From Paraphysomonas bandaiensis (taxonomy: Eukaryota; Protista; Chrysophyceae): a stretch of 64,000 nt of DNA. The notes beneath the pieces are model-generated. The model was not told the DNA's origin, searched no databases, and was given only the letters and a program-made list of their open reading frames with translations. Below, in pieces: positions 34,785-63,527 of this stretch. A program made the position numbers and the translations under genes. The DNA lies in NCBI GenBank assembly GCA_965644295.1, contig CBFFRP010000168.1:58640-122639 (forward strand), given 5' to 3'. Positions within the stretch are counted from its first letter, which is position 1. The number at the start of each line of letters is the position of its first letter.

Positions 34785-36701
34785 GTTCAACCTGTTGGAA
34801 TAATGAAATGTGGTTGTACCAGATGTTGATGTTGTATTACTAATGGAGTTACATTATCATCAGTGTGCCTATTCATTTCATTTCGGTTTGGATGTGAGAT
34901 AGTATTGTATTGTAACGAATGTCTTCATGAGTTTCTTTCTCAGAGGATTCGTTGTGCAATGCTTGCGATGGAGAGATTGTATTGTATTGTAAATATTTTG
35001 TCCGATATTTTGTCAGTTCAAATTCAGTTTGTTGTGATGAGTGTCTACATGGGAGTCAATTCGAACATATGTTGTCAGTGAATACTATGTTCTTAGAATC
35101 AAGTGTGTGTTGAGCAGAGAAGCTAGTCAACAGCAGTTTGTTGTGGAGTGTCTACATGGGGTGCAGTGTTCAAATCATTGAGTGATGTTTCATGGCGTCA
35201 ATGTGAATGTGTTCGATGTGGATGCGAGAGTCAGTTGTGAATTTGTATCATATTTTATGTTCATATATATTAAGATATTGTAGAAGCAAGGCCGATGGAG
35301 TTTTCTTTGTATTCCTGGAATGGAGAGTTCAATGAGCCTGTGTTTCAAATTGTACAGATTCGACATACGTGATATCATTTTACCTATACTATATACCGAT
35401 GATACTTATATATAATACTATATATTGTATAATCGAGAGTGAGCTATTCAATATTAGCGATTGTTTCTTTTCTGGTTCAGTTTGATTTATTTGTTGTTCA
35501 ATAATTTCGATGAGATATATATGATTAATGTTTTCGATTTGAGAGTCCATTACTATTGAGTTGTTCAATTGTTTGAAGTTCAGATTTGTTTTGAGAGTTG
35601 AAGTTTGTGTTTTGCAAAGTGAGGTGTCAAAGTACTAAAGTTGTATTGAGTTAGACTGAGAGTTAAGAGCGAAAATTCTGTCAGTGAGTTCAATAGTATG
35701 TTGGCCAATGATGTACTGTCATACTGTTTAATTTCATTTCAATGATGGTTGCAAGAGGAGTTTCTGAAGTTTGTTGAAAATGTTTCAAACGTGTTACAGA
35801 TTAAATGGGAGTCATCTTGTCAAATTACGTGAATCTTCTCGTGACATTATCGTTTATAAGTTTTCCAAGCTGGATACATTGTTCGATGATATACATAGTT
35901 CATTTTGTGGACAGTGTTGTTGCACATGTGTTTTGTATTGTGCTGCAATTGTATTGAAAGAGTTTGAATGTCTATTGCCAATTGCAATTTTGAATCAAGT
36001 GAGAGCAGATTCTTCTGTGAGGGAGTGTTTTTGATATTCATTGTTCTTCATCAGGAGTTATCTCCGATTACATTGCTTGTCAGTATGGTGGTGATATTGT
36101 GAGGTTCAGAATGTGATGCGAGTGAAAGTGATGTTTTCTTCAAAAGACAAGAGAGATGTTGTTAGTTTTTTCAACGGTTCTTTGCATTTAAACTTGAAGT
36201 GTTGAGTACAAGAAGGTTACTGAGAATATTTTGTTCGGTGGTATCTAAACTTCCAGAGTGCTATTGTGATGGTATTTGAAATGTACCTACAATTTTGAAT
36301 TCCTTGATTCAAAATAAGTTGTTTGAGTTTGATGATATTATATTATATTCTTGGAATGTAAAATTCTTTCGAGGTTGTCACTTCTCAAACAGTTCAGGGT
36401 AATGAGTGAGATCCTGTGTCAGCGATGTGATAGAAAGTCTGTTGTTCGAACTCTAATGTCAGAGAACTATCAGATGCTATGTACTCCTGAGTTGAAAATT
36501 GATTCTATGAGTGTATCAAAACTGGTTGTTATACATTGTTCTGAGTAACTATGTGGGAATCAATGAGTCAAAATTCAACATGGAAGTTCTGCAGTTAACT
36601 TGATGTTTTTTTATAATTTCCAGGTTTCCTTTTCCATGTAAGTGTTCTACAGATTTCCAGTCGACAAAAAAGGCTATCTATGATGTGGGTATTGAGCCTG
36701 T

Positions 36702-38879
36702 GTGTCAATATCTCAACAAGAGAATGTACTTGATTTCTTTCTATGGTTTCTAAAATTTTCAGATCTTGCTTTCAAATGGTCAACTATAGACAAGGAATGT
36801 TTTGGAATATTCTATTCTATCTTTAAGTTGTCGTACTACTTGAGAGGAAAACACTTTACGATTATGACGGATCATGCAAATCTAAAGTGGATGGAAATTT
36901 CAGTGGTTGACCGAATAGTTCGAATGAGAATGTTCATGCAAAACTTTGATATGGATTTGTTACATTTCAAAGGTAAACTAAATCGTTTCGCGGATTGGTT
37001 ATCAAGAATGGGGCAGGAGAGAGCAGCTTCTTGTGTCATGTTGTTAGATCTTTGTCTTGAAGATTCATGTTCAGATATTGAATTGTGTCTAGGAGTGGAG
37101 TATGAGAATTCTAGTCTGTTGTCGGAAGACCAACTTTTTATGTATGATGAGAGTGGTATGTTGTCAGCGGAGGCAGATGATCTTGCTTGTGTTTCAGAAT
37201 TCCCAGAGGAACTAGTCAAAGCCTTGGATGAGTTAGCTAGTCAGAATTTACAGCCAAAGTCTCTAAAAGAAGCTTTTGATCTAGTACACAATGGTAGAAT
37301 GGGTCATCACGGAGCTAAGAGAACATGGTTGAAACTTAGTAAGGTATTTCCGGGTCATACCTTGACAACAGAAATTATCCAAGATTTTATTGATCGATGT
37401 CCTATTTGTCAAAAGTTAGGTTATGATATGAGTACATCGTTGCAAGCACCGATAAGAGCATTAAATCTTGATAATTGCAGACATTTTGTGGGTTTCGATA
37501 CATTGACTGTTACTCCGGTAGATGCTAATGGTTATTGTTGTATTCATGTGGTGAAACAATTACCATCTCGCCTAGTAGGAATATATCCAGCTCGTAATTA
37601 CTCAGCAGAGGGAGTGGCACGTGCTTTGTTCAGTTACTTTGTCACATATGGAATTTCTGAAGTGATGGTATCGGATCCAGGTTCGAATATCACAGCTAGG
37701 GTTGTTCAGTTACTCCTGAAATGGTTTGGAGTCCGCTTTAGAATGTCGTTAATGAATAGACATGAGTCCAACATGGTGGAACGAAGTAATCGGGAATTAT
37801 TGCGTTTTCTTAGTGCATTGGTTCATGACGAAAGATTAGAAAATTGGAGTGACCCAGAATGCTATTTGTTGATACAATTCATTCTCAACGATGAAATTTC
37901 AAGTGAGACGGGTCTTTCACCTTTTGAGTTTACGTTTGGAACAATGGATTCAAAGTATTTTCATATCCCTGACAGTTCTTCAGATGAATTTGCTTCTTCG
38001 ACTTATATTTCCAATTTCAATGATAACCTTAAAGCTATCAGGAAAATTGCGTGTGAAGTTCAGAAGAAAATTCAGAATAAACGTATGTCCAAAACCCCAG
38101 CAGAGAAAATGACTCAATATCAACCAGGCCAGCTTGTTTTGTTTAAACTGGATGTAACAAAACATATGCCGTCCAAATTATATCCTCGATTCAAAGGACC
38201 GTATGAAGTAGTATCCACGTACAAGGCCGATGTTATTTGTACTCATTTAGTAATGCGGTTTGATGTGACGTTACATATGTCTTGGTTGAAGCCATTCTTT
38301 GGTAGCAAGGAGGAGGCTTTTCGCATAGCAATGATTGACTATAGGCAATTTTCTCTTGACAAAGTGGTGGCTTATAGAGGGGACCCCGAAAAAAGAACTA
38401 CTATGGATTTCAGAGTTCTCTTCTCCGATCAATCGTTGTTGTGGATGCCATATTCTACTGATCTTGCGACAAGTGAAGCTTTTCATGAATATATTTTCAG
38501 TGTCCCTGAATTGTTTCCCTTACGTTTTTCTGCAAAGGAAGCAGTGCAACAGAAGACTAAACTCAAGAAGTGTGTTATATCCACTGTGATACCTGGAGAC
38601 GTTGTCTTTGTTAATCTTCGAGCGTGGGGTGCAGACTTCTATGACGCTTTAGAATTACCTAATGCATATGATACTCTCTATGTAGTTCAATGTGTCTATA
38701 AGCGTTGGGCGGGCCGCAAAAAGATCACTATTGATGTGTATTGTTCTCTCTTTAACTCTACTTTTGAATGGTCAGCCTATGATGTCCAGAACTATGGAAC
38801 TACACGAGATTTTAACCCTGACACCATGGTTCTGGTAGACTCCGCCTTCTGTGCCAGATTTCCCAATATCCTCTCTTAA
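36702..38879 (+). CDS. G1 partial pol: RNase H C-terminal half, integrase and chromo-like domain
   Basis: WSTIDKECFGI..., TDHANL and NRFADWLSR (RNase H). HNGRMGHHG...CPIC zinc finger. GFDTL / SDPG / NMVERSN (DDE). GPY motif and LDKVVAYRGDP chromo-like segment. Confidence 0.9.
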   Translation: MSISQQENVLDFFLWFLKFSDLAFKWSTIDKECFGIFYSIFKLSYYLRGKHFTIMTDHANLKWMEISVVDRIVRMRMFMQNFDMDLLHFKGKLNRFADWLSRMGQERAASCVMLLDLCLEDSCSDIELCLGVEYENSSLLSEDQLFMYDESGMLSAEADDLACVSEFPEELVKALDELASQNLQPKSLKEAFDLVHNGRMGHHGAKRTWLKLSKVFPGHTLTTEIIQDFIDRCPICQKLGYDMSTSLQAPIRALNLDNCRHFVGFDTLTVTPVDANGYCCIHVVKQLPSRLVGIYPARNYSAEGVARALFSYFVTYGISEVMVSDPGSNITARVVQLLLKWFGVRFRMSLMNRHESNMVERSNRELLRFLSALVHDERLENWSDPECYLLIQFILNDEISSETGLSPFEFTFGTMDSKYFHIPDSSSDEFASSTYISNFNDNLKAIRKIACEVQKKIQNKRMSKTPAEKMTQYQPGQLVLFKLDVTKHMPSKLYPRFKGPYEVVSTYKADVICTHLVMRFDVTLHMSWLKPFFGSKEEAFRIAMIDYRQFSLDKVVAYRGDPEKRTTMDFRVLFSDQSLLWMPYSTDLATSEAFHEYIFSVPELFPLRFSAKEAVQQKTKLKKCVISTVIPGDVVFVNLRAWGADFYDALELPNAYDTLYVVQCVYKRWAGRKKITIDVYCSLFNSTFEWSAYDVQNYGTTRDFNPDTMVLVDSAFCARFPNILS

Positions 38880-41639
38880 TTTAGAATTTTCCTAATTTCC
38901 GGAATCTCTTATCCGTTGGAAGGAAAAAGAGGGTAGTGTCACGCAGCAGTATACACTGCGTGTATTTGTATATAGAATACTGTGCTGTATATAGTGTGTA
39001 TATATCGTATATATCTGGAGCAGTATATGGTATATATATGGTATACATATGCATATAGAGGTTGTCATATACAGGGTATATTCACTGTATTTGGGACTTA
39101 CCTTTATCAGTTTACGACATTCGAGGTTTTCAGTTTAGTAGCTGAGATACGTTTTTCAGTTTCTGACGGCGATTCACATTTGATTTGGACTGAAGTCCAG
39201 AACTTCGAAGTTTTAGTACAAAATACGTGATTTCGTAAATAGTCGAAGTTTTCGTATGTGAATATTGGTTTTAGTACGTGAATATTGTTTTTCGAGTGTG
39301 AAGTGTTGATCGTAGTGTAGTGTTGATCTACGTTGAACGAGATGGGTGTTTGCTCATTCTTGTCACTGACTTTATAATTTACTTTTCTTAAAGAGCACCT
39401 ACGGTTTGTTAGTGTTTCTGGCAGTGCGCCCGTCGTTGCGCCCTGGACAGTATCGCAGCCCGCTGGCGGATACTATTTTGGTGGGTTGTAGAGTCTAGAC
39501 AAGAGATCATCTTTTCTTGGTCCATTCAGAGTTGAGTCACGGTTTGTGAGTCATCTGCGGGCACAGAAAAGTTACAGAGGGTCCTGTGAACGAAGCCACT
39601 GCAATACCTGCAAGTGACCACCATTAGCAGCAGCTTCGCAAGTCCGTTCATTCCAGGGACATGGAGGGTCCTGGTCACGAAGCCACTGCAATACCTGCAA
39701 GTGACCACCTCTAGCAGCAGCTAGGCAAGTCCGTTCATTCCAGGGACATGGAGGGTCCTGTGAACGAAGCCACTGCAGTACCTTCAAGTGACCACCATTA
39801 GCAGCAGCTTCGCAAGTCCGTTCATTCCAGGGACATGGAGGGTGCTGTGAACGAAGCCACTGCAGTACCTGCAAGTGACCACCATTAGCAGCAGCTTCGC
39901 AAGTCCGTTCATTCCAGGGACATGGAGGATCCTGTGAACGAAGCCACTGCAGTACCTGCAAGTGACCACCATTAGCAGCAGCTTCGCAAGTATCTTCATT
40001 CCAGGGACATGGAGGGTCCTGTGAACGAAGCCACTGCAGTACCTGCAAGTGACCACCATTAGCAGCAGCTTTGATGCAAGTCCGTTCATTCCAGGGACAT
40101 GGAGGGTCCTGTGAACGAAGCCACTGCAATACCTGCAAGTGACCACCATTAGCAGCAGCTTCGCAAGTCCGTTCATTCCAGGGACATGGAGGGTCCTGGT
40201 CACGAAGCCACTGCAATACCTGCAAGTGACCACCTCTAGCAGCAGCTAGGCAAGTCCGTTCATTCCAGGGACATGGAGGGTCCTGTGAACGAAGCCACTG
40301 CAGTACCTTCAAGTGACCACCATTAGCAGCAGCTTCGCAAGTCCGTTCATTCCAGGGACATGGAGGGTCCTGTGAACGAAGCCACTGCAGTACCTGCAAG
40401 TGTCCACCTCTAGCAGCAGCTAGGCAAGTAATTTCATTCCAGGGACATGGAGGGTCCTGGTCACGAAGCCACTGCAATACCTGCAAGTGACCACCTCTAG
40501 CAGCAGCTAGGCAAGTCCGTTCATTCCAGGGACATGGAGGGTCCTGTGAACGAAGCCACTGCAGTACCTTCAAGTGACCACCATTAGCAGCAGCTTCGCA
40601 AGTCCGTTCATTCCAGGGACATGGAGGGTCCTGTGAACGAAGCCACTGCAGTACCTGCAAGTGTCCACCTCTAGCAGCAGCTAGGCAAGTAATTTCATTC
40701 CAGGGACATGGAGGATCCTGGTCACGAAGCCACTGCAGTACCTTCAAGTGTCCACCTCTAGCAGCAGCAGCACAAGTGTCTTCATCCCAGGGACATAGAG
40801 GATCCTGGTCACGAAGCCACTGCAGTACCTGCAAGTGACCACCTCTAGCAGCAGCTAGGCCAGTAATTTCATTCCAGGGACATGGAGGGTCCTGGTCACG
40901 AAGCCACTGCAATACCTGCAAGTGTCCACCTCTAGCAGCAGCAGCACAAGTGTCTTCATCCCAGGGACATGGAGGGTCCTGTGAATGAAGCCACTGCAGT
41001 ACATTCAGGCATCCACCCCTAGCAGCAGCTTCGCAAGTATCTTCATTCCAGGGACATGGAGGGTCCTGTGAACGAAGCCACTGCAATACATCCAAGTGTC
41101 CTTCAATAGCAGCAGCTACGCAAGTCTGACTATTCCATGGGCCAGGAGGTTCCTGTGCATGAAGGCCCACGAGGTGCATCATTTGCTGTAGTCTGCCGTA
41201 TTGTGCACATGTATTCATTAGTTTGATGTGTGGGCAGCCCATAGCCAGAGCCCATGAGACCATTGAGTTGGTCATACAGTAGTGAGATGCATGTGACTCA
41301 AGTCTCTCTCTGCTCTTATCAGTGTAGACGATATCGTGAAATCTCTTACAAGTCATGATCACTGGAAGGACAGCCGTGTGTGGGATCATAGAGATGATGA
41401 TACGAAGAACATCATCGTTAAGAGCAGATAGAGTGATTTCACTCATAGTTTATATGAGGCTGATAGATTGCTAATACACTGCAAAATAATGATACCAGAT
41501 CAGATATACACACATATATATACAGTACAGGAGTACGGAGTACATATATTCTAGATACTAGAGAAGGGGACAGACCATAGAAAAGATCCTCAACCACAAA
41601 GACACATACACCGTCACGTACGTACAGTAGTAAAAATAC

Positions 41640-49803: not shown

Positions 49804-50162
49804 GGTATTTAAGGAGGGTTATGTAGAAACTTGTCCACGACCAGTGAAAGTATCTGTAGAGGTGAGAGAACGAGATTGATGGGCGGTGTGTATGTATATA
49901 TAGAGGTATGTATGAGGGATTACTGAGAATAGAGCAACACACACACTCCACTCAAACATATCCAATAAGATAAGAGTAGATGTTGTTGATTGGATATAGC
50001 GATGTTCATAGTAATACGTACACTTGTATATGAAGAAATTTCTATGATAGTGCTGGTATGTATGTATGTATGTATGTATGTATGTATGTATGTATGTATG
50101 TATGTATGTATGTATGTATGTATGTATGTATGTATGTATGTATGTATGTATGTATGTATGTA

Positions 50163-53100
50163 CGTAGAGCTAAATGATGATTCGGTATAGAAGTCTTCGA
50201 GTGATGGAAATGAAAGTCAACGTGCACATTCGTTTTTGTCACAGTGATTATGTTTTCAGTTATTGTACATGTGTGACTCTGTAGGATACGAGTGAGAGTG
50301 TACAGTAGAACATGATCAGCTGTAGTATTATTGTGTTGTAGGGAGACACCATAATTTTCTATCACTAACGATTTCTGTAGTATTTGCAAAGAGACTTGTC
50401 TTTTGCCTACCTGTAGTGTAGTTTGAACGGAGGACAACGGGCGAACTGGATCCGTGAGTGTTTGATTGATCTGTAGTATCAGTGTTGTATTTTCGATCCA
50501 AGTACGTATTTCTCTACGTGATAGAAAATTATGAAGAAGTCGAGCAACGAGAAGCTCAAGAAGTTTAGGAACAAGGCGTTGGACCAGCGGTCCAGGGGCC
50601 AAGGGGCAGAGGCATTGACCCCAACGGTGCCGATTCTGAAGTATGGGACGAACACCAACCTGGCGGTATTTAAGCAGAAGCTCACAGTGGCCGCCATGAT
50701 GCTATTTGGTGACCTAGCGAGGCTCGTGGAGACCGATGAGTATTATGAACCACCCAAGATAAAGATTGAGGACTACGATCTCGATAATGACCCCCACGGT
50801 CTGAACCTGGAAGAACTTAAGGATGCGAGAAAGACACGCCAAAGGAAGATTGACCAAATGCGTGACAATCGATCAGCTTTCTATGCGTTCATGTATGACA
50901 GACTGAGCAACGAGTCCGTGGACGCGATTAAGCAATTGGAGGAATACGAAGAAATTAACTCCTCCAAGGACCCTCTACTGTTGTGGCTTGCTATCAAGCA
51001 GACTCACAAAACAGCGACGAACTCCAATGTAGGGACCATCATGCGTGCAGAAACGAGAAAGAAGTACCAAGATGTGCGTCAGGGTCCATTTGAGAGTATC
51101 GTGGCCTATAAGGAGCGTTTCGATTTTCTTTTGGAAGCGTACAATGATATGGAGAATCCGAAGATGGAAGAAGAAGATATAGCTATGGACTTCTTCAGGG
51201 GTCTGGACGACACCAGATATGAGGAGTTTAAGACCAGTTTTATGAATGACTTAATGATGGGGACACAGAAGCCACCCAAGCACGTGAACGAGATCTACAC
51301 TAAAGCTTCGAAGTATATCACCCCGAAGAGAGGAGCGAAACCTAACGGTGGTGTTGCGTTTGTGAGCAGGAAGGACACCTCGACTAAACAACAGCGTCGC
51401 ACAGGTGATGCTGATGACAAGACGAAGTCGAATGGGACCGACGAGTCGAAAGGAAGCGTGCGAAAGCATAGAGGCCCTATTGTATGTTGGGGTTGTGGAA
51501 AGACTGGACACAAGCTAAACCAGTGTCAAGAGAACGTCGAACCAGAGGAGAAACAATGCTCAGTGACTATGCAGAATGCTTTCACATCGGGAGGAGAGCG
51601 TTTCGAATGGTACGAAGTTCTACTAGACAATCAGGCGGATGTGTCCGTTGTGCACCCGTGGCTACTGACAGATGTAAGACCTGCCGATCGTAAGTGTAAA
51701 GTAGCTGGCTTGTCTGGTCACGCAGTAGAACTGCCCAATGTGGGAGAGCTGCCACAATTTTTCACATGTAAAACTGCCGACAACCTACGAGTCAGTGTGC
51801 TATGCCAAGCTGATGTCGAAGACCTGTACCCTATTGTGTACGAGCCAGGAGTGTCATACACGGTGTGTCTACCTAATAGAGAGCTAGTGTTCTACAGACG
51901 GAACAAAATGTATATAGCCGATATGAGGGATTGGGTAACACAAGGCAGGGTAAATATTACGACAACAAGAATGAAAGAACAAGAATACACTAAAAGCGAA
52001 GTGGTGAGAGCTCGGAGGGCGCTGGAACTTGTACGGAACGCGGGTTTCGACTCAGAGCAGGGAGCCATGAACTTTGTGAGCGACGGAAATGTAACAGACG
52101 TGCCGTTGACGGCGCAAGACGTGAGGCGAGCTTTCGACATATACGGGAAGCCTTATGAAGCGGTTAGGGGGAAGACCACTAAACGTAAGAGCGGTAGGCA
52201 GTACGTGGACGTGGGAATCAAAGCAGATCAGCCCAAGCCGCAACGTTTGTATACCGATATATTCAGTGTGAGAAAACAACCGTTCCTGATAACACTGTCC
52301 GAGCCACTGGGGTTGACTCTTGTATCTCCGGTAGCTAGTGAGAAGACTGATGATCTAGGTCTAGCTTTTCAGGAGCAAGTATCTCTACTAAGAAGTCATG
52401 GTTTCGCACCAACTGTAGCCTATCTGGATCCGCAGCCTGGTTTCCAACCCCTCAGAGGACAGATTACAGGGGTGGAAGTAGATGTGTGTGGAGCAGGGGA
52501 TCACATGGACAAGGTAGATCACAAGATCCGGAGACTGAAAGAGACTATTAGATCTGTGCAGGCAGGATTACCCTGGTCACTGCCTGATAACATGGTCAGA
52601 GATCTGGTGAAGTACTCAAACAGTCGCCTAAATATCAGAAGGCCGTCTACAGGCACATCCATAGTAGCGCCACGAGTAGCGTTCACAGGGAGGAAGCCTA
52701 ACTACCGAAAGGAACTAGAGCTAGCATTTGGTGACTACGTGGAGTGCTACAACCCAAAGGTGCGAAGCAACGATGCCGAGCAAAGTCGCACTGAGCCGTG
52801 TATTGCATTGTACCCTACTGGAAATGCCAACGGTAGCTGGCTTTTCATGAATGTGAAGACACACAAGCGAGTGAGAAGGACACACTGGGTGAAAATGAAG
52901 ACAACGCAGCTCATAATTGATGCGATAAATCAGATGGCGAAGATGGGTGATACGACTAGGAAGAGTCAGATTCCGAACCCACTCCTACAGTCGATAGAAG
53001 CAGAAGAGCAGCAGAAAGGCGAAGACATGAAGGAGAGTACGCCAGAGGACGTTAAACAGACTCCAGTTGCGGAAACAATAGTGGAAGATGTATCTACTAC

Positions 53101-55260
53101 TGTGGTTGATGTAGAGCATAGCGGAAACCCATTAGGTGATGACGGTGATAATGAAGGTGAAGTGCCAGAACTTGTCGATGAGGAGCTGGATGACGATGTC
53201 CCAACTATAAAGTCCGGCAGCAGCATTACAAGCAGTGACGAGACAGGCGTTGAGAACGACAGGTCGCCGGATGCGAAGTCGAAACCAGTAGAGTACAGGG
53301 CCTTTCACACGAGTGCGATGAAGGGATTGCGTGAGTATGGTCCATCGGCATATAACGCTATCATATCGGAGCTGAAACAACTTTTGCATGACAAGAAGGC
53401 TATGCGTCCAGTACACCGCAAAGACTTATCGGCAACCCAGTTGAAGAGAGCTATTCGATCTCTGATGTTTCTCAAGACTAAGTATGATGGCTTAGGGCGC
53501 TTCGAAAAGATAAAAGCAAGACTGGTAGCTAATGGCGCACAACAAGATAGGAAGGTGTACGTAGACACATCGTCACCGACAGCAGCGATGCAGTCGATTA
53601 TGATGTGCCTGGCGATAGCTGCTAAAGAGGGACGTCACATAGGTATCATGGATATAGGAGGCGCTTACCTGAACGCCGAGATGTCTGGCGAAGAAGTCAT
53701 AATGGAACTAGAGCCAATGTTAACAACGATATTGAAGAAAGTGGCTCCTGAAGTATCACCGTATGTTGATGAGACTGGTAAACTACTAGTGCGGCTGGAC
53801 AAGGCGCTATACGGTTGCATCCAGAGTGCGAAACTCTGGTACGACACGCTTACAGGATATTTGAGAAGTTTGGGATTCGAGCACAACGCGGTCGACCCAT
53901 GTGTAATGAACAAAGTAGCTGGCGGGCGAAAGTGTACAGTGGTGATATTCGTGGATGACATACTGGTCATGTCAAGCCATAAGGGCGACTACCTAGAGTT
54001 GCTTAAGAAACTGAAAGAGAAGTTTGGGGATGTAAAGCACGACGATGGGAAAGATCTGTCATATCTCGGAATGCACATTAGAGCAGAGGGAGATAAGGTG
54101 ACAGTGTCCATGAGATCGTACATCGAGAATTTTCTACGAGAACACGGAGTGACAGGAACTGCTACATCACCTGCTACAGCTACTCTATTTAAGAACACCA
54201 TGGACAAACCCACTAGTAAGAGTGATAGAAGGAAGTTTCACAAGATGGTGGCTCAGTTGCTGTACCTGGCCAAAAGGGTTAGACCAGACATACTGCTTGC
54301 AGTCGCTTACCTTAGCACGAGAGTCAAGAATCCGACGCATGCTGACATGGAGAAGCTTGGCAGGGTGACCCGCTACCTGAACGCGACTAAGGGACAGGAC
54401 TTGTTGCTGTGCATTGGAAAGAATCTTACCGTTACTGGATACGTCGATGCGGCATTTGGGACTCATGAAGATGGAAAGGGTCATTCGGGTCTGGTCGTAA
54501 AGGTGGGGGATGCAACAGTACTCTGCAAATCGTCGAAACAGCGCATTGTGACACGTGACTCGACGGAATCAGAGTTGGTAGGTCTATCAGATATGTTAAT
54601 GATGATTGTGCAATGTGCAGAATTCATAAAGGAACAAGGATACAGTATTGACGCACCTCGAGTGTTGCAAGACAATACCTCGACTCTATCTCTTGTAACG
54701 AAAGGCGGAGGCAAATATCGTACAAAATACCTGCGTGTGAGGCGTGAATTCATCAAGGAAAGGGCAGATGAAGGAAGCATTCAATTGGAGTACTTACCCA
54801 CAAAGATGATGCTGGCTGATGCGTTGACGAAGCCCCTCCAAGGTACTCTGTACAAGTTTATGACATGTGGTATCGTGGGAAACAATACACATGCCACAGG
54901 GGTGCGTAGAGCTAAATGATGATTCGGTATAGAAGTCTTCGAGTGATGGAAATGAAAGTCAACGTGCACATTCGTTTTTGTCACAGTGATTATGTTTTCA
55001 GTTATTGTACATGTGTGACTCTGTAGGATACGAGTGAGAGTGTACAGTAGAACATGATCAGCTGTAGTATTATTGTGTTGTAGGGAGACACCATAATTTT
55101 CTATCACTAACGATTTCTGTAGTATTTGCAAAGAGACTTGTCTTTTGCCTACCTGTAGTGTAGTTTGAACGGAGGACAACGGGCGAACTGGATCCGTGAG
55201 TGTTTGATTGATCTGTAGTATCAGTGTTGTATTTTCGATCCAAGTACGTATTTCTCTACG
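50163..55260 (+). mobile_element. Complete Ty1/Copia LTR retrotransposon (element C1)
   Basis: 356-bp LTRs at 50163-50518 and 54905-55260, apparently identical, with CGTAGAG...CTCTACG termini. 5-bp TSD ATGTA is supported by a 1-nt phase shift of the tetranucleotide tract. Confidence 0.95.
50531..54919 (+). CDS. C1 gag-pol polyprotein (gag-PR-IN-RT-RH), single ORF ending inside the 3' LTR
   Basis: CWGCGKTGHKLNQC knuckle; LLDNQA protease; integrase YTDIF/YLDPQ/VDHKIR; RT KARLVA, DIGGAYL, KALYG, FVDD; RNase H YVDAAF, STESE, QDN, ADALTK. Copia domain order. Confidence 0.95.
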   Translation: MKKSSNEKLKKFRNKALDQRSRGQGAEALTPTVPILKYGTNTNLAVFKQKLTVAAMMLFGDLARLVETDEYYEPPKIKIEDYDLDNDPHGLNLEELKDARKTRQRKIDQMRDNRSAFYAFMYDRLSNESVDAIKQLEEYEEINSSKDPLLLWLAIKQTHKTATNSNVGTIMRAETRKKYQDVRQGPFESIVAYKERFDFLLEAYNDMENPKMEEEDIAMDFFRGLDDTRYEEFKTSFMNDLMMGTQKPPKHVNEIYTKASKYITPKRGAKPNGGVAFVSRKDTSTKQQRRTGDADDKTKSNGTDESKGSVRKHRGPIVCWGCGKTGHKLNQCQENVEPEEKQCSVTMQNAFTSGGERFEWYEVLLDNQADVSVVHPWLLTDVRPADRKCKVAGLSGHAVELPNVGELPQFFTCKTADNLRVSVLCQADVEDLYPIVYEPGVSYTVCLPNRELVFYRRNKMYIADMRDWVTQGRVNITTTRMKEQEYTKSEVVRARRALELVRNAGFDSEQGAMNFVSDGNVTDVPLTAQDVRRAFDIYGKPYEAVRGKTTKRKSGRQYVDVGIKADQPKPQRLYTDIFSVRKQPFLITLSEPLGLTLVSPVASEKTDDLGLAFQEQVSLLRSHGFAPTVAYLDPQPGFQPLRGQITGVEVDVCGAGDHMDKVDHKIRRLKETIRSVQAGLPWSLPDNMVRDLVKYSNSRLNIRRPSTGTSIVAPRVAFTGRKPNYRKELELAFGDYVECYNPKVRSNDAEQSRTEPCIALYPTGNANGSWLFMNVKTHKRVRRTHWVKMKTTQLIIDAINQMAKMGDTTRKSQIPNPLLQSIEAEEQQKGEDMKESTPEDVKQTPVAETIVEDVSTTVVDVEHSGNPLGDDGDNEGEVPELVDEELDDDVPTIKSGSSITSSDETGVENDRSPDAKSKPVEYRAFHTSAMKGLREYGPSAYNAIISELKQLLHDKKAMRPVHRKDLSATQLKRAIRSLMFLKTKYDGLGRFEKIKARLVANGAQQDRKVYVDTSSPTAAMQSIMMCLAIAAKEGRHIGIMDIGGAYLNAEMSGEEVIMELEPMLTTILKKVAPEVSPYVDETGKLLVRLDKALYGCIQSAKLWYDTLTGYLRSLGFEHNAVDPCVMNKVAGGRKCTVVIFVDDILVMSSHKGDYLELLKKLKEKFGDVKHDDGKDLSYLGMHIRAEGDKVTVSMRSYIENFLREHGVTGTATSPATATLFKNTMDKPTSKSDRRKFHKMVAQLLYLAKRVRPDILLAVAYLSTRVKNPTHADMEKLGRVTRYLNATKGQDLLLCIGKNLTVTGYVDAAFGTHEDGKGHSGLVVKVGDATVLCKSSKQRIVTRDSTESELVGLSDMLMMIVQCAEFIKEQGYSIDAPRVLQDNTSTLSLVTKGGGKYRTKYLRVRREFIKERADEGSIQLEYLPTKMMLADALTKPLQGTLYKFMTCGIVGNNTHATGVRRAK

Positions 55261-55414
55261 ATGTATGTATGTATGTATGTATGTATGTATGTATGTATGT
55301 ATGTATGTATGTATGTATGTATGTATGTATGTATGTATGTATGTATGTATGTATGTATGTATGTATGTATGTATGTATGTATGTATGTATGTATGTATGT
55401 ATGTATGTATGTAT

Positions 55415-58400
55415 TGTGGCATGAAACTCCTAGTTTTAGGGCTGGGAGTTTCTTTCCTTCGGGAAACGTGGGGTTTCCCTTCAGGATACGGTAGTCTAGT
55501 GGCTGTAGTTTCATGCCAGACTAGTCATACATGATTCTTATATGCATAATAATCATTATATTCCTAGTCAAGGCCTTTTCTTGTTGTCTCGCGTAGTTCC
55601 ATCACAATATCGATATTTGAACGAATTATGACTAGACGCACGAGAAGTGCTAAGAGAAGTGAGGAAGAGAAGATAGAGGAACGGGTTCAAGAGAAACCCA
55701 TGGCTTCCACCTCGAGGGAGGAGGAGGAAGAGGCAGTAGTCTCTAGTTCGGAGCTTCCAACGCAGAGGGTTGCGGAGGAAGAGTCATTAACTACTCCGAA
55801 TGTGGAGGTAGTGAATGAAGGAAATCAAGGAAATCCAGAGGGGGAGTCTGGATGGGAAGTGGAGACTTGGGCTGCGCTGGGAGAAGCGACAGTCGATGAA
55901 GAGGGTTTGTCACTTCCGCCAAACTCTAGTTCTGAGCGGGAAAGGGTTGACCCGCAGAGTGAGGAGAGAAAGATAAAGATCGCCCGAAAGAGGGAGATTA
56001 GGGAGAAGCTTAGGGAGAATAAGGAATGGGAGGCCTCTAGGGGGGGCAAAGAGTCTCCCAAAGGGAGGGAGGAGAGGAGTTCCTCCGAGGAATTTGAGAG
56101 GTCAGGGAGATCGAGGGAGAGATCTCGTAGTTATTCCGACTCCGGGGGGGAGGAATATGAAGAGCGGGGAAGGTCTCGCAGGCGCTCTTCCTCAAGGAGA
56201 GAGGAGTATTATGAGCGGAGTGGAAGATCGAGAAAGGGACGATCGAGGGATCGAAGTAGTAGATCCTCGGGTAGAAGATCGAAAAGATCTCGTCGCGAAG
56301 AGAGCTCCAGAAGGTTGAGAGCCTCTGAGCTAGAATTGGAAAGTCTGCGGCAAGAGGTGCAGCAGTTAAGGTCGTCGTTGGAGGGGCAGCGTTCGACGGG
56401 AGGGGACAGGTCCGGAGGAGCACCTGCCATACCGCGACAAAGCAGTATAGGGAGGGCAGAGGAAGCTAGCTCGTCCAGTAGTACCCTCCTGGTTACGTCT
56501 AATGACGTTCCTCCATTAGTCGCGCTGACTTATGACGCGGTGGAGGATTATATTGAGAAGTGTCGCCTTTACTTTCACAAGAGTGGTGGGAGAGAGGTAG
56601 ACCGATCGCTAATCTCGGCCAAAATGGCGGCTAAGATAGACTTTATGAGGGGAGACGTTAACGGGAAAGTTGACGACTGGAAGGATCCGAAGGTGTTACC
56701 GTCGGAGGATTTCTATGCGTTCCTTCGTAAGATGGTGAAGGATCAGGGGCATGTGGAGGTAGTGGAACCTTTTCAACATATTCGCGAGTGGGCTCGCGAG
56801 GTTCGCACCTTCCGGAATGTCAAGGATGTTATGGACTGGGGTGCGGACCTCAAGTTGAAATTGGAAAAGGAGGAAGGATCCGGCACATGGGAGGAGAATA
56901 AGGTTTGGATCGAAGATTTCAAACGTTCCCTCCGGATTGATCTTCCGTTCCATGATCAGGCTCGAAGGAACAGATTTCTGACTGAGAAGGTTCAGCCCAT
57001 TTTTGAGAGTTTGTCAGAGGACAAGCGAAATTTGTTGGGTTATTTGACGGCCTTGCACAAAGCCGTTACAGCTATTAGGGATGGCTGGGAGGCTGTGGGG
57101 CCTTTTGACTTATTTGTGGCACGACAGTGGCCCCGAGGATCGATGGGAGGGCGATCCGAGGCAGACCAACGGGATCGGAAGGGGGCCGATCAACGGGAGA
57201 GAAAGCGCACGCATTCACCTGCGAGGAGTTCGCAAGGTGGTTCGTCTAGTGCTGGAAAAGCGACAAAGAGAGCGAAGAGTAGCTCTCAAACGGATGTGTC
57301 GAAAGTGCCAGATTCAGATCGATGCAATGTGTGTGGTCGCCCAAAGGAGTGGCACAAGAGTGCGGAGTGTCCACTTAAGCAAGCTGCGGGGGCGAACTTG
57401 GATCCAAACGTAAAATGGAGAGAGTGTGCAGTAGCTAAGGATATTTTGGCCAAGAGGGGCCAACATACGTTGCCTAGAGAGGGATGGGTCTTAAGGCAAA
57501 GCGGTTCATATGGAAAGGGCTCCAAGGGTGAGTCCCATGATGTGCATTCTGATGTTATGGCTATTATGGCCCTTAAGTCTTTTTCTTCATTGCCGTTCAT
57601 AACGGTTGTTGTATGCAATGAACAGGGAAAGAAAAGGACATGTAAAGCTCTACTGGATACGGGCGCGTCGGCTAACTTCATCAGTAAGAATGTAGCTGAA
57701 TGGTTAGTAGATAGTGGTTCTATTCCTATTCCCGTAAGTAAGAATATCGCTGGGGGTTTTAAATCAGCAAGTGCTTTGTGTGAGAGGGGTGTGTCCCTCA
57801 ATGTAGAGATCTTTACGGAGGTAAAGGAACCTCCAGTGTTGCAAGCTCGCATAGATGCATGGGAGTTAGATCTAAATTTTGAATTGATTTTAGGGGTACA
57901 TACTGTACGTAATTTAGATTTAGTAGTGCAGTGCCCTAGTGCTTTCATGAGCTCAGATAAGGCTCGAAGGGTAGCCGACGTAGTGGGAGACAGTGCATTC
58001 CCTCTTGCGAGAGAGAGAGATGATCAGTCCGGGGGAGCAGTGTCTCCGAGCCTTGGCGTGCACGCGTCTTACCCTTGTGGGGGGGAACGAGCCAGCGTTC
58101 GTCTTCCATTGCGTAAAAATTATAACCTTGAGGTTCGAGGAAAGTTGGCCCCTCTGGAAGTAGGAATCAGTGACAAAGGGGAGGATTGGTCGTACCCAGC
58201 GGAGGAACAGCTGCTTTCGATGGGAGAAGATCTTTCAAATTTCTCAAAAAGGTCGGCATGGGACCGAGAGGATATGAAAGAAATTCGCAACGATCAGTTG
58301 GAATCCATTGACTCTGATTATCTGGACTCGGAAGGTGAGTCTCCTACAATTCCGGAAAAGGTTTATGGGTCACCGGACTTACAAGAAAAGATTCGTGGGG

Positions 58401-61306
58401 TCCTGTTGAAGTATAAAGACATCTTTCGATTAGAAATTCGGAAGGGAAGACCCGCAAAGTTAGAACCGTTTGAGCTCGAAGTCCGGAACCCGGAGGAAAC
58501 GTGGTTTATACCGGCAAATAAATTGCCTCCTAGGAGGTTGGATAGGAGTCGACAGAGGGAACTCCAGCGTTTAGTGGAAAAGTTAGAGCGGTTGGGAGCG
58601 ATACAACCTAGCTCGGCCACACACTATAGTCATCCTTTTGTAGTACCTAAGCCGAATAATAAGTGGCGTTTGGTGTTGGATTATAAGAATCTCAACAAGG
58701 TTACTACCTCTGAAAGCTGGCCAATTCCGAACATTAGGGATATGATTTATCGGATTGGTGAGAAACGTCCTAAGTTCTTTGTAGTGATGGATCTCACGTC
58801 TGGGTATCATCAGGCGCCAGTGGGCGAGAAGTCCCGTGCCTGGGTCGCCTTTATTACTCAAAACGGGGTGTACGAGTGGCTCCGGCTCCCCATGGGTTTG
58901 AAAGGTGCCCCATCCTACTTCCAGCGGCAAATGCAAAGTGTTGTACTAGCGGGTTTAGTCTATAAGATTTGTGAGATATATCTCGATGATTGTATTATAT
59001 TTGCTAGCTCGGAAGAGGAGCTGATTGAAAATTTATCAGCAGTTTTAGAGAGATTTAAGAAGTTTGGCCTTACAGTTAACCCTAAGAAGTGTGTCTTTGG
59101 GGTCTCAGAGGTAGAGGCTGTGGGTCATAAGATCAATGAGTTTGGTCATACCTTTACTAGAGAGCGGATTGATAGTATATTGGCTATCCCGCGTCCTAAT
59201 ACCCAGAAACAGTTGAAACAGTTCATGGGTGTAGCAAATTTTGTAAGAGATTGCGTACGCGAATATGCACTGATTGCGAAACCATTGCATGCAATGTTGG
59301 GGAATTATACTAAGTCGCAGGCTCGACGTAAGGTGTTGCACTGGACAGAGGAGTCCAGTGTTGCCTTTGATGTGCTAAGGGAGCGCATTCATGAGTGTCC
59401 CTTGTTATTTTTTATGGATGATGTTTCCCCCATCTTCCTATATACTGACGCGTCAATAATTGGTATAGGGGCACACTTGGTGCAAGTCGTGGAGGGTCAC
59501 GAGCGCACGATTGGGATGATTAGTAAGGCGTTCGACTCAACGTTAGCTAAGTGGCACACCTGCGAGCAGGAAGGTTTTGCCATCTTTTATGCATTAAATA
59601 AGTGGGAATACTTGTTGAGGGATCGACGTTTTACGGTTCGAACCGATCACGATAATTTACGTCAACTCAAACAGGAGTATGGCCACATAAAACGAGTGCA
59701 GCGCTGGTTTATGTGTTTTCAGTCGTTTGATATCGTGTTCGAACACCTTCCAGGGGAGATGAATGTGGTGGCTGATGCTCTTAGTCGAGTTTGTGGGGTG
59801 GACGCATCCGACGAGGTCGATGACAATCTGTGTTCTTCTCTCGAGCGGTGCCTGGAGGAAGAGTCGCATACTGAGGATCAGCGCATCCCTAATCACTTCT
59901 GGAAGGCAATTAAGGCTTGTCACAATAGTGTAGTAGGCCACCATGGGGTGGAACGTACAATGGGAAAGTTGCGAAGGAGCAACAATAATTGGAAGAACAT
60001 GCGTCAGCATGTTATACGTTTTATTAAGTGTTGTGTGTGTTGTCAAAAGATGTCAACTATTAAGCCGGCAGTGTGGGTTCGGCCTTTTACTCTATCTAAG
60101 TATTCCATGGGTGAGTGTATCTATATGGATTATATCGAGGGTTTGATTCCCGATGAGTATGGGTATACTAGCATTCTGGTGATGATTGATGCCTTTTCAC
60201 GGTGGGCTGAGTTATTTCCTACCAAGGGTATCTCAGCAAAGGACACGGCACGAGCGTTGTTGCATTATTTTGGCCGATTTTCGATGTGTTCGATTTGTAA
60301 GCTCACTTCAGATAAAGGGAGGGCCTTTATGTCCGATATTGTTCGGGAGGTGAGATCTTTGTTAGGGGTGGAGCACTCCTTTACAGTAGAGTATTCAAAG
60401 GAGGAGAATGGTATGGTTGAGAGGGAGAATAAGGAAATTCTCCGTCATCTGAGGAATATTATTTTCGAGAAAGTGGTCTTGAAAAATTGGTCTGATGTGC
60501 TGCCAATGGTGCAGCGGATTTTGAATGCGGCAATCCATGGGTCGACAGGAGTGGCCCCAGCACAATTAGTATATGGAGATGCCATAAACCTAGATGCAGG
60601 CTTTATTTTAGATAGGAAGAATTTGTCTCCAAGGGAGGAGAAGGATCTGTCCGAGTGGGTGGCAGATAGACTCGCAGCTCAGGAGAGGGTGCGAGTGTAT
60701 GCTCGTCAGAATCTGGAGATTCGGGATCAACACCATATCGAGTCCAATATGCCCGAGGGTGTTTCGTCGTACCCGGTGGGGGCATTTGTGCTAGTGGAAC
60801 ACAGGCATAACTCGTTACGGACAGGTCCAACGAGCAAGTTGTTGCCCTATTTGAAAGGGCCTATGGAGGTGGTTGGTGTGGAAGGACCAATTTACACCTT
60901 GAAAAATTTAGTGTCGAGAGGACAGGCACGGTATCATATATCTAAGCTGCGGCCTTTTTGTTTTGATCCGAGGGTGGATGATCCCGTACAAGTGGCGTTA
61001 CGGGATGACGTTGAGGGTACCAAGTTTGTGATGGAGAAGATTACAAACATGAGGGGCGACCCTAAAGGTTCGCGGTGGGATTTGTTCTTTGAAGTATACT
61101 GGTCAAATTACGATGTTCCGACGTGGGAGTCGTGGAAGACAGTACGAGGAACAGATGCGTTATTGAAGTACTTGAAGACGCACTCTAGTTATACAGTACG
61201 AGCCCTATTACCCAGGAGAGGGAAGAAGCGCTCCAGGTCTCCAGACACGGCGGCAGAGGAAGTCATTTCAAGTGAGGATGAGTCGTCGCAACAGTCAGGA
61301 GTTTGA
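55415..61306 (+). mobile_element. Gypsy-type chromodomain retrotransposon (element G2); putative 5' LTR 55415-55606; no 3' LTR found in the window
   Basis: Starts TGTG immediately after the microsatellite. Putative LTR end ...TCACA at 55606. Intact polyprotein follows. The LTR end is inferred because no second copy is present. Confidence 0.8.
55628..61306 (+). CDS. G2 gag-pol polyprotein (RS/acidic gag, PR, RT, RH, IN, chromodomain), single 1892-aa ORF
   Basis: CNVCGRPKEWHKSAEC knuckle; LLDTGA; WRLVLDY, DLTSGYHQ, PMGL, YLDD; TDAS, TDH, ADALSR; HN...GHHG...CVCC, YMD/SDKG/NGMVER; KGPM; EKITNMRGDP...VYW...TWE. Confidence 0.95.
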   Translation: MTRRTRSAKRSEEEKIEERVQEKPMASTSREEEEEAVVSSSELPTQRVAEEESLTTPNVEVVNEGNQGNPEGESGWEVETWAALGEATVDEEGLSLPPNSSSERERVDPQSEERKIKIARKREIREKLRENKEWEASRGGKESPKGREERSSSEEFERSGRSRERSRSYSDSGGEEYEERGRSRRRSSSRREEYYERSGRSRKGRSRDRSSRSSGRRSKRSRREESSRRLRASELELESLRQEVQQLRSSLEGQRSTGGDRSGGAPAIPRQSSIGRAEEASSSSSTLLVTSNDVPPLVALTYDAVEDYIEKCRLYFHKSGGREVDRSLISAKMAAKIDFMRGDVNGKVDDWKDPKVLPSEDFYAFLRKMVKDQGHVEVVEPFQHIREWAREVRTFRNVKDVMDWGADLKLKLEKEEGSGTWEENKVWIEDFKRSLRIDLPFHDQARRNRFLTEKVQPIFESLSEDKRNLLGYLTALHKAVTAIRDGWEAVGPFDLFVARQWPRGSMGGRSEADQRDRKGADQRERKRTHSPARSSQGGSSSAGKATKRAKSSSQTDVSKVPDSDRCNVCGRPKEWHKSAECPLKQAAGANLDPNVKWRECAVAKDILAKRGQHTLPREGWVLRQSGSYGKGSKGESHDVHSDVMAIMALKSFSSLPFITVVVCNEQGKKRTCKALLDTGASANFISKNVAEWLVDSGSIPIPVSKNIAGGFKSASALCERGVSLNVEIFTEVKEPPVLQARIDAWELDLNFELILGVHTVRNLDLVVQCPSAFMSSDKARRVADVVGDSAFPLARERDDQSGGAVSPSLGVHASYPCGGERASVRLPLRKNYNLEVRGKLAPLEVGISDKGEDWSYPAEEQLLSMGEDLSNFSKRSAWDREDMKEIRNDQLESIDSDYLDSEGESPTIPEKVYGSPDLQEKIRGVLLKYKDIFRLEIRKGRPAKLEPFELEVRNPEETWFIPANKLPPRRLDRSRQRELQRLVEKLERLGAIQPSSATHYSHPFVVPKPNNKWRLVLDYKNLNKVTTSESWPIPNIRDMIYRIGEKRPKFFVVMDLTSGYHQAPVGEKSRAWVAFITQNGVYEWLRLPMGLKGAPSYFQRQMQSVVLAGLVYKICEIYLDDCIIFASSEEELIENLSAVLERFKKFGLTVNPKKCVFGVSEVEAVGHKINEFGHTFTRERIDSILAIPRPNTQKQLKQFMGVANFVRDCVREYALIAKPLHAMLGNYTKSQARRKVLHWTEESSVAFDVLRERIHECPLLFFMDDVSPIFLYTDASIIGIGAHLVQVVEGHERTIGMISKAFDSTLAKWHTCEQEGFAIFYALNKWEYLLRDRRFTVRTDHDNLRQLKQEYGHIKRVQRWFMCFQSFDIVFEHLPGEMNVVADALSRVCGVDASDEVDDNLCSSLERCLEEESHTEDQRIPNHFWKAIKACHNSVVGHHGVERTMGKLRRSNNNWKNMRQHVIRFIKCCVCCQKMSTIKPAVWVRPFTLSKYSMGECIYMDYIEGLIPDEYGYTSILVMIDAFSRWAELFPTKGISAKDTARALLHYFGRFSMCSICKLTSDKGRAFMSDIVREVRSLLGVEHSFTVEYSKEENGMVERENKEILRHLRNIIFEKVVLKNWSDVLPMVQRILNAAIHGSTGVAPAQLVYGDAINLDAGFILDRKNLSPREEKDLSEWVADRLAAQERVRVYARQNLEIRDQHHIESNMPEGVSSYPVGAFVLVEHRHNSLRTGPTSKLLPYLKGPMEVVGVEGPIYTLKNLVSRGQARYHISKLRPFCFDPRVDDPVQVALRDDVEGTKFVMEKITNMRGDPKGSRWDLFFEVYWSNYDVPTWESWKTVRGTDALLKYLKTHSSYTVRALLPRRGKKRSRSPDTAAEEVISSEDESSQQSGV

Positions 61307-61642
61307 TCTATGAGTTTTGACGGTTAGAATCCGCTCTGTCCAGGTGATGGACACCTATGAGAAGGTTCTCATACATCACAGTTTAGTTGGAGTGATCAGT
61401 AGGATAGTAGGGGTGATTTTTGTGGGTGTTGTTTTTTTGTTGCTAGAATGTGTCGTTTTTTTTTAGTTCATGTGCCACATTTTTTTCTGTAAAATGTGGA
61501 AGGTACCGTACTCAAGCCCGCACCATAATGGTGTGGAACTATATAAGTGGTGATGATGAGTGACCAGTGGTATGTATGGTGTTGCTGGTGAGTAATAGAT
61601 CCAGGGAGGTGGGTGTTGAAGGAGGAGCTCTCTCATCACAGC

Positions 61643-62617
61643 ATGGTATCATACATACAGAACATAATAACAGCGAGAACATATCATAGTAGCATGGAAT
61701 CAACTACCACGGAATCAACTACCACGGAATCAACTACCACGGAATCAACTACCACAGGGGGCATTAGAAAAGTCGGTGATGGGGAAACCAAAAATCGTAA
61801 CTCCTCTGCGTTAGCTCAGTTTGCGAAGTACTTGGAGATGCGGTTCGACGGGAAGAAGAGGTATAAGGAACTCATAGACAGTGATATAAATGTAGAACTA
61901 TTTCAATGTTTCGGTGGCTTTTTGATCGATCACGCCGTCCATGGAACAACGAAGAAGCCTTTGACCCTAGGTACTGCTTGGCAGTATTTGTCAGACACGA
62001 AGACTGCGCTGACGAAGCGATTTAAAAGAAATGAGTTATTAAGCAGCTCCAATGAGCTGTGGTACAAAGATGTGAGAGCGGCAGTATCAAAGCATATTAT
62101 CAAGCGGTGTATCGCACAAGGAGTGCGTATATCAGAGAAAACAAGTCCAGTGGGGAAAGAACTAATGAAGCGCATAGGTGAATACATTATACATCGGGCA
62201 TCTGATTTCTCCGGTAAGTGGACATACTTCACATATCTATGATTTACTGTATACCCTATGGTAGACAACGTCAACAAACAGAAAAAACTAAATCGAGTAT
62301 TGACTAAAGGACTCGGCCTATTGTACGATGACGAGAAACGTTTTCTTGATGAGCCGAAACCCTGTATGGCAAGTCAGTCTACTTCGTACAGAGAATGGAA
62401 GAGTAATTTAAAATGCATAGCTGAAAAGGTTGAATTGCGTGTTATTGTTGATTTATTTGGTCAGGAAAATTACGACAAGTTTCACCCCAAAAAAAAAGCC
62501 TCTAAGAAATACATAAACAGTATATATGATGCAATGAGTGCACGAAGGGACAGTGATGGTAACATTATTCCAAGGACAAAGAAAAGGAAACTTCAGTCTG
62601 ATGTTAGTAATCTGTAG
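61643..62617 (+). CDS. Spliced ORF resembling the N-terminal (core-binding) part of Crypton-type tyrosine recombinases, with no catalytic domain; exons 61643 (or 61694)-62213 and 62265-62617
   Basis: 51-nt GTAAGT...TAG intron joins the two ORFs in frame. LTLGTAWQYLS..K..L..RF...WY..VR...R....G....K..P resembles such domains. No R-H-x-x-R-Y catalytic set is seen. Resemblance only. Confidence 0.5.
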
Positions 62618-63145
62618 AATGCCAATATATGTATTCATTTATAACCACTCCATCAACTTTTTATAATGTACCCTTATAATTAATGATTCATTAGTAATTG
62701 GAATACATCGTATCATTATTTACAGAGCATACAACAGTATAATCAACCATTACAGCGTTCAGCATTTTATTATTCGACACAGTCTGATGTTAGTAATCTG
62801 TAGAATGCCTATATGTATTCATTTATAACCACTCCATCAACTTTTTATAATGTACCCTTATAATTAATGATTCATTAGTAATTGGAATACATCGTATCAT
62901 TATTTACAGAGCATACAACAGTATAATCAACCATTACAGCGTGCAGCATTTTATTATTCGACACAGTCTGATGTTAGTAATCTGTAGAATGCCTATATGT
63001 ATTCATTTATAACCACTCCATCAACTTTTTATACTGTACCCTTATAATTAATGATTCATTAGTAATTGGAATACATCGTATCATTATTTACAGAGCATAC
63101 AACAGTATAATCAACCATCACAGCGTTCAGCATTTTATTATTCCA
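62594..63145. repeat. Tandem repeat, ~185-bp unit x3
   Basis: CAGTCTGATGTTAGTAATCTGTAGAATGCC at 62594, 62780 and 62964. Confidence 0.95.
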
Positions 63146-63527
63146 CACCGTTCAGAATTCTTATCACATACAGCCATACTGCATACCCTTACACAACATG
63201 ACACATATTCACTGCAAGATGGAACAGGGGCAGCCGGGCGCTTGTGTCGCTTAGGCATCCCTCTTGCACCGGTAAGTATAAACGTCATTGCGCCTACAAC
63301 AGCATAATAAACCATCACAGCCTTCAGCATTTTATTATTCCACACCGTTCAGAATTCTTATCACATACAGCCATACTGCATACCCTTACACAACATGACA
63401 CATATTCACTGCAAGATGGTACAGGGGCAGCCGGGCGCTTGTGTCGCTTAGGCATCCCTCTTGCACCGGTAAGTATAAACGTCATTGCGCCTACAACAGC
63501 ATAATAAACCATGACAACATTCAGCAT
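63126..63527. repeat. Tandem repeat, 197-bp unit x2
   Basis: TTCAGCATTTTATTATTCCACACCGTTCAG at 63126 and 63323; TTCAGCAT again at 63520. Confidence 0.95.

Follow-up and report, generated by a model that had tools for sequence, protein, structure and literature searches.

We describe a 12-nt perfect palindrome, AATATCGATATT, that occupies the position of the primer-binding site (PBS) in G2, a long terminal repeat (LTR) retrotransposon of the chrysophyte Paraphysomonas bandaiensis. G2 lies in a 64,000-nt stretch of contig CBFFRP010000168.1 (positions 58,640 to 122,639 of the forward strand; hereafter "the window," in which all coordinates are given), and the palindrome spans positions 55606 to 55617, its first A being the last base of the 5′ LTR. 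A tRNA-binding site is the usual occupant of the primer position in LTR retrotransposons. Here, the palindrome stands in place of the tRNA-complementary site, and its position is the start point of minus-strand DNA synthesis, overlapping the last base of the LTR. The palindromic site is real, strongly selected, and widespread, and is a variant of a rarely described and unexplained kind of primer site. As a tentative but preferred reading, we suggest that two genomic RNAs pair through the palindrome and that it also supplies the minus-strand primer in trans.

The palindrome at the LTR edge of G2 and its relatives

G2 starts with TGTGG at 55415, and the 3′ end of its LTR (...CATCACA) lies at 55606; across this end, the window reads ...GTAGTTCCATCACA, then ATATCGATATTTGAACGAATT, then ATG. 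The palindrome reads the same on both strands, and 10 nt separate it from the ATG of the G2 polyprotein (55628). No second copy of the G2 LTR was found in the 64-kb window, and we sought full copies in the window's own genome (62.5 Mb in 669 contigs), where two copies with both LTRs were found on contigs C235 and C377. The 3′ LTRs of these copies read ...GGGGAAGGGGTAG / TGTGGCATG...CCATCACA / GTATGTAT... and ...CACA / ATACATAC..., with GGGGAAGGGGTAG forming the polypurine tract before the 3′ LTR, and the 5′ flanks give 4-bp target-site duplications (TSDs), GTAT and ATAC. The paired LTRs and TSDs of the full copies thus fix the 5′ LTR of G2 at 192 bp (55415 to 55606, plus strand), with its final A as base 1 of the palindrome. 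The original prediction had placed a 12-bp perfect palindrome at this site, on the A of the terminal CA and 10 nt before the ATG, and had proposed that the LTR end, which it could only infer, be checked against other copies: the palindrome proves exact, and the C235 and C377 copies confirm the end. The prediction had also considered an LTR that ends elsewhere and is followed by a TGG-type PBS; with the end verified, we find no TGG of the tRNA type at G2, where the LTR is followed by ATATCGATATTTGAACG.

G2 is a Ty3/gypsy LTR retrotransposon, with TG...CA LTRs, a TSD, a polypurine tract, and the corresponding order of pol domains. Its gag-pol polyprotein is encoded by an open reading frame (ORF) of 1892 aa (55628 to 61306, plus strand) that includes reverse transcriptase (RT), RNase H, an integrase zinc-binding domain, and an integrase core, matched in Pfam as RVT_1 (aa 1006-1169), RT_RNaseH (aa 1239-1367), Integrase_H2C2 (aa 1426-1475), and rve (aa 1495-1590), with two RNase H models matching; RVT_1 and the order RT-RNase H-integrase assign G2 to Ty3/gypsy (Metaviridae). 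About 1000 aa precede the RT domain (55628-58627), and the one Pfam match in this part is a weak one to aspartyl protease (aa 670-724), with neither a gag nor a zinc-knuckle domain. A second gypsy element of the window, G1 (33031 to 39576), had been predicted to share integrase and chromodomain signatures with G2. G1 and G2 are 27% identical over RNase H-integrase, and the last 301 aa of G2 have no Pfam Chromo match even at E ≤ 1. The PF00385 chromodomain is present in many G2 relatives at 44-53% identity.

Both gypsy elements of the window and every other delimited gypsy LTR family of the genome carry a palindrome exactly on the last base of the LTR. The families were found by protein searches, and their LTR ends were fixed by both LTRs and the flanks in every family but L005, where the end was placed by homology with G2. 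For reference, 12-nt perfect palindromes occur at 35 of the 64,000 positions of the window, a base rate of 5.5 × 10−4 per position. Among the eight gypsy LTR families of this genome, the LTR edge bears one of four 12-nt perfect palindromes. The first, AATATCGATATT, is common to G2, a family at 88% identity, and a deleted derivative family (206-bp LTR) that shares most of its LTR with G2; the palindrome and LTR common to G2 and the deleted derivative fit co-packaging and trans-mobilization. The L005 family, 86% identical to G2 in DNA, has AGTATCGATACT, which differs from the G2 palindrome at positions 2 and 11, that is, at mirror positions. In G1, the palindrome is AGTAATATTACT (33670 to 33681), the first base of which is the last A of the 640-bp 5′ LTR (33031 to 33670, plus strand; TGTCAC...GTTACA; TSD GAGG; 100% identical to the 3′ LTR at 38937-39576), and the same sequence is found in the families at 54-57% identity, with an LTR of about 317 bp. 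Two families at about 30% identity, with LTRs of 1210 and 1024 bp, have AGTAAATTTACT. Further G1-like relatives located in the genome (70, 68, 63, 61, 38, and 36% identity) stand outside the eight-family count.

A protein search for relatives in other organisms retrieved 596, all metagenomic. We examined 86 metagenomic contigs, 6 taken by protein identity and 80 by an RT-integrase profile, with relatives at 38-52% identity over RT-integrase. A perfect palindrome of at least 12 nt lies just upstream of the polyprotein ORF in 59 of the 86 contigs, and most of those without one are too short to reach the region. In 58 of these 59, the palindrome opens with an A that follows C or T (after AC in 44 and after AT in 9), the metagenomic LTR ends being placed from polypurine tract...TG and CA, not from two LTR copies; in wrap-around contigs, it directly follows the single LTR. 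The 59 relatives contain 21 distinct palindromes of 12, 14, or 16 nt, for example AATATTAATATT, AATAATATTATT, AATAAGCTTATT, AATAACGTTATT, AGTTTTAAAACT, AATACCGCGGTATT, and one 16-mer. Together with the 4 palindromes of the genome, and with two sequences found in both sets, this gives a total of 23 distinct LTR-edge palindromes.

On a maximum likelihood tree of 66 RT-integrase sequences, the palindrome changes at least 34 times, and a perfect palindrome beginning on the A of the inferred LTR end is kept in 65 of the 66 rows. The close pairs L099/L133, L075/L076, and L117/L121 differ at mirror positions only, and mirror-position differences separate AATAATATTATT from AATATTAATATT, AGTTTATAAACT from AGTTATATAACT, and AATATCGATATT from AGTATCGATACT. 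The outer bases are relatively conserved (A[AG]T...A[CT]T), and the inner four are always palindromic (TCGA, ATAT, AATT, TTAA, and others). The comparative signal is very strong, with symmetry kept through 23 variants, and shows selection for full-length self-complementarity across a large Ty3/gypsy lineage in which the sequence itself changes freely. Lineage-wide selection of this kind had been proposed from the shared position and symmetry, and different sequence, of the palindromes in G1 and G2, with mapping onto a tree as a check; it is borne out by the number of palindromes and by the symmetric differences in close pairs. The further suggestion that different palindromes act as family-specific pairing codes does not survive in its strict sense, as three palindromes (AATATCGATATT, AGTAATATTACT, and AGTAAATTTACT) are each common to families with unrelated LTRs; a coarser, group-level pairing code is possible.

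The same pattern bears on a reading in which the palindrome works as DNA: a dimeric protein, encoded by the element or by the host, would bind it where the LTR meets the internal region. The 12-bp dyad, whose outer bases vary comparatively little, would suit such a protein, but half-sites do not require the variable center to be palindromic too, as it always is, and three lengths (12, 14, and 16 nt) and 23 sequences would demand many specificities. We regard this explanation as improbable.

Pairing partner and proposed mechanism

None of the palindromic sites starts with TGG, which leaves no pairing with the CCA end of a tRNA, and we found no tRNA genes in the 64-kb window. No conserved sequence follows the palindrome between families, and no further conserved candidate for a primer site is seen there. 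Folding gives the single 12-mer an energy of 0; its homodimer is predicted at -10.8 to -15.5 kcal/mol. The fold energy and the invariably palindromic center exclude the palindrome as a hairpin of its own; because the central bases are also palindromic, all 12 would pair, which is possible in an intermolecular duplex only.

Two alternatives have been described for elements without a tRNA site, namely pairing in cis with the 5′ end of the transcript, as in the self-priming of Tf1, and pairing with a downstream copy, as at the conserved hairpin site of GalEa (PMC7175516, PMC5445492), and the GalEa site likewise takes in the final A of the LTR. Our searches make cis pairing, too, improbable, and if anything slightly more so than a protein-binding site. 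In seven families, the longest exact match of an LTR segment complementary to the palindrome is at most 6 nt and duplex energies are within those of shuffled controls, on which ground we reject Tf1-style pairing with the LTR. Against random windows drawn from the contig in question, a partner within 60 nt downstream gave no signal in 50 elements (mean z +0.13; below -2 in 1 of 50), and we likewise reject a partner of the GalEa type. No second copy of the palindrome occurs elsewhere in the element in five whole elements, which speaks against a bipartite site. Moreover, pairing in cis with a different segment would need no palindrome. With no tRNA-type site, no cis partner, and no self-fold, the partner of the palindrome must, to judge from these comparisons, be the same site on a second molecule, and the mechanism is narrowed to pairing between two copies.

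If two genomic RNAs pair in this way, they would form a 12-bp PBS:PBS duplex with a predicted energy of -11 to -15.5 kcal/mol. Elements of the G2 clade would offer the palindrome in a U5:leader stem loop, like a retroviral dimer initiation site. A cut would then be made in one strand, at the duplex's 3′ edge, in the way that the RNase H of Tf1 cuts an RNA duplex, and the U5-R of the partner would be copied from the new 3′ end. The last base of this primer would pair with the final A of the LTR and stay on the minus strand, which would explain why this A lies inside the palindrome. Primer and template would each contribute part of the progeny site; a half-site change could then be mirrored within one cycle, which would account for the frequent and always symmetric turnover.

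Folds run with the palindrome held single-stranded, for G2 and relatives L005, L011, and L039-L046, predict a U5:leader stem in G2 at 55577 to 55647 (plus strand), with arms at about 55577-55604 and 55618-55647, the palindrome in the apical loop, and the gag ATG inside the 3′ arm. An apical-loop palindrome on a 20-30-bp U5:leader stem is predicted in G2, L005, the deleted derivative, and the 88% families, with closing pairs that vary by family (UCA/UGA, ACU/AGU, GCUA/UAGU). Some metagenomic relatives have extra perfect palindromes of 14-20 nt inside the LTR/U5, long enough for hairpins (L052:4875-4894, L052:4445-4464, L069:520-535, L061:655-668, and L051:7013-7032), several of them 36-80 nt upstream of the PBS palindrome.

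The main rival holds that the palindrome is a dimer linkage site only, in which RNA pairing would serve packaging and a separate primer, such as a short or internal tRNA match or a protein, would start DNA synthesis. Self-complementarity with free change of sequence is typical of dimer initiation sites; the contact in mouse mammary tumor virus (MMTV) is a 6-nt palindrome in an apical loop (PMC4264320), the placement that is predicted in the G2 clade. We consider this reading unlikely, though well ahead of pairing with a protein or in cis: it leaves unexplained the lock of the palindrome to the last LTR base in nearly all elements, and it finds no other conserved candidate primer site after the palindrome.

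Several points weigh against pairing and priming through one site. Priming at the palindrome is a step that we infer, and the transcript start, cleavage, and primer are putative; four public sequencing runs, from a set kept as contigs and mostly DNA, showed no starts or ends and no cleavage. Cutting both RNAs of a symmetric duplex costs the template its primer site, and the model calls for an asymmetric cut or for three or more RNAs. A few relatives have a palindrome that is shifted by 1-2 nt, is only 10 nt long, or contains wobble. The flanking stem is weak across 53 relatives (mean z -0.73; 10 of 53 below -2), which makes it a feature of the G2 clade and not of the whole lineage, and excludes a universal U5:leader stem. 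Finally, AATATCGATATT persists in very divergent elements (16 of the 66 tree rows), as a conserved host partner would also predict. Such a partner, a host small RNA (a tRNA fragment or a piece of rRNA or snRNA) complementary to the site and acting as primer, would account for the conservation of AATATCGATATT in elements whose RT-integrase identity is no more than 42-49%. The remaining 22 variants speak against it, however, as about 23 different host RNAs would be needed, each with a palindromic end, and we consider it the most improbable of the explanations weighed here.

Neighboring elements and insertion sites

The window copy of G2 departs from the full copies at about 61487, directly before the polypurine tract, and the tract and the 3′ LTR are missing here; its 3′ untranslated region, as delimited by alignment with the C235 and C377 copies, extends from 61307 to this divergence point (61487, plus strand). 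An unrelated ORF (61613-62242) lies beyond the break-off (61488-63488), followed by 184-bp (62626-63177) and 197-bp (63095-63488) tandem repeats. At the other end of the element, a 17-nt inverted repeat, 88% complementary, links the start of the G2 LTR (55412-55428) with 55507-55523, 80 nt further in.

The G2 insertion is hosted by an (ATGT)n microsatellite (55261 to 55414). G2-clade elements sit in (TGTA)n microsatellites, seen in the window at 50057-50162 and 55261-55414 and at loci L002, L004, and L006-L018, and the repeat borders almost all of the copies examined (at both ends wherever both flanks were seen), in either orientation and with TSD GTAT or ATAC. The ORF directly upstream of G2 (50531-54919) is that of a copia element (RVT_2) at 50163-55260, which is inserted in the same (TGTA)n repeat with TSD ATGTA. 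Its LTRs of 356 bp (50163-50518 and 54905-55260) have the ends CGTAGAG...CTCTACG, not TG...CA, and only 12 nt, TGATAGAAAATT, lie between LTR and ATG; at the PBS position of this copia element, there is neither a palindrome nor a TGG site. These insertions suggest that the (TGTA)n microsatellite is a preferred landing site. Other gypsy families, namely G1 and the 54% family, are not in microsatellites.

G1 is inserted in a minus-strand gene of 87-bp tandem repeats (31100-33030 and 39577-41450). Its LTRs are identical, yet it has no ORF longer than 87 aa and no RT match at 34.8-36.7 kb, and it therefore looks like a non-autonomous derivative; other G1 copies share the same 727-aa open frame, and the copy on C186 has 1314 aa. 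The sequence AATATTAATATT, one of the palindromes of the metagenomic relatives, also occurs in the window at 22716, 25993, and 43545, each time in the same conserved block of about 170 nt and in a non-LTR context. These three sites adjoin the ends of minus-strand ORFs, two of them at or just past the 3′ end of the ORF, and the block is probably the shared 3′ end of a gene family. The window also encodes a phosphoacetylglucosamine mutase, for which a search returned metagenomic and MMETSP matches at no more than 57% identity, and a marine poly(A) metatranscriptome is among the public runs; these data point to a microbial eukaryote from an aquatic, probably marine, habitat as the host.

Significance and comparison with known systems

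To our knowledge, the start of DNA synthesis in LTR retroelements without a tRNA site has been solved for one case only, Tf1. A palindrome at the LTR edge has been reported once before, in a fungal copia lineage, and was left unexplained; the same principle now appears in another superfamily and in numerous aquatic eukaryotes that are not in culture. If priming and dimerization do share one site, genome pairing, packaging, and the start of reverse transcription would be linked, with consequences for which elements can mobilize one another or recombine. Annotation tools that insist on a tRNA site will overlook members of this lineage or place their boundaries wrongly. We infer self-priming in trans as a testable proposal rather than a demonstrated fact. 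Somewhat more guardedly still, we propose that dimer-templated self-priming may be a third way to start reverse transcription in LTR retroelements, widespread among gypsy elements of protists, both marine and freshwater, with GalEa as a perhaps convergent case.

Plant surveys list only tRNA, half-tRNA, and Tf1-like self-priming (PMC6317226), and a site of another kind, also unexplained, is the polypyrimidine stretch of Skipper elements (PMC5006619). We found no description of a palindromic site in Ty3/gypsy in the full text of Creative Commons papers and bioRxiv. The nearest precedent in print is GalEa, reported in 2017 (PMC5445492), a copia lineage in Pezizomycotina whose 10-nt site works by an unexplained mechanism. 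GalEa and the present elements both have a short conserved sequence at the PBS position, with no tRNA complementarity and no complementary U5 segment. The GalEa site becomes a palindrome only if the last A of the 5′ LTR is taken as part of it (ACTGATCAGT / ACTAATTAGT), and the present sites also include that A; the 10-mer ATTGATCAAT of L111, a metagenomic relative, closely resembles it. However, a hairpin in cis is formed in GalEa with a second, complementary box 12-41 nt downstream, whereas no such partner is found here (60 nt, 50 elements), and GalEa is a copia lineage with a site of 10 nt, whereas the present elements are Ty3/gypsy elements of aquatic microbial eukaryotes with sites of 12-16 nt.

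Reverse transcription is self-primed in Tf1 and Tf2 of the Tf1/sushi group, where RNase H cutting of an RNA duplex makes the primer (PMC7175516), and self-priming is predicted for the plant Tcn1 clade (PMC6317226). The present elements resemble Tf1 in being Ty3/gypsy elements without a tRNA site, in a U5 stem, predicted here for the G2 clade, that flanks the site, and in an element-encoded primer of about 11-12 nt that would pair directly after the LTR, with an RNase H cut proposed for its 3′ end. In Tf1, however, a non-palindromic site pairs with the initial 11 nt of its own transcript, whereas here the site would find its partner solely in another copy of itself. Dimer initiation sites of retroviruses, such as MMTV pal II and the HIV-1 DIS (PMC4264320), share with the present sites a self-complementary sequence in the 5′ leader that is free to change if it does so symmetrically, and an apical-loop position is predicted in the G2 clade. 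In MMTV, the dimer contact is the 6-nt loop palindrome pal II, and a palindrome inside the tRNA site is dispensable for dimerization (PMC4264320). Retroviral sites are about 6 nt long and stand apart from the PBS, alongside a tRNA site, whereas the palindromes described here are 12-16 nt long and lie in the PBS position itself, in elements that have no tRNA site.

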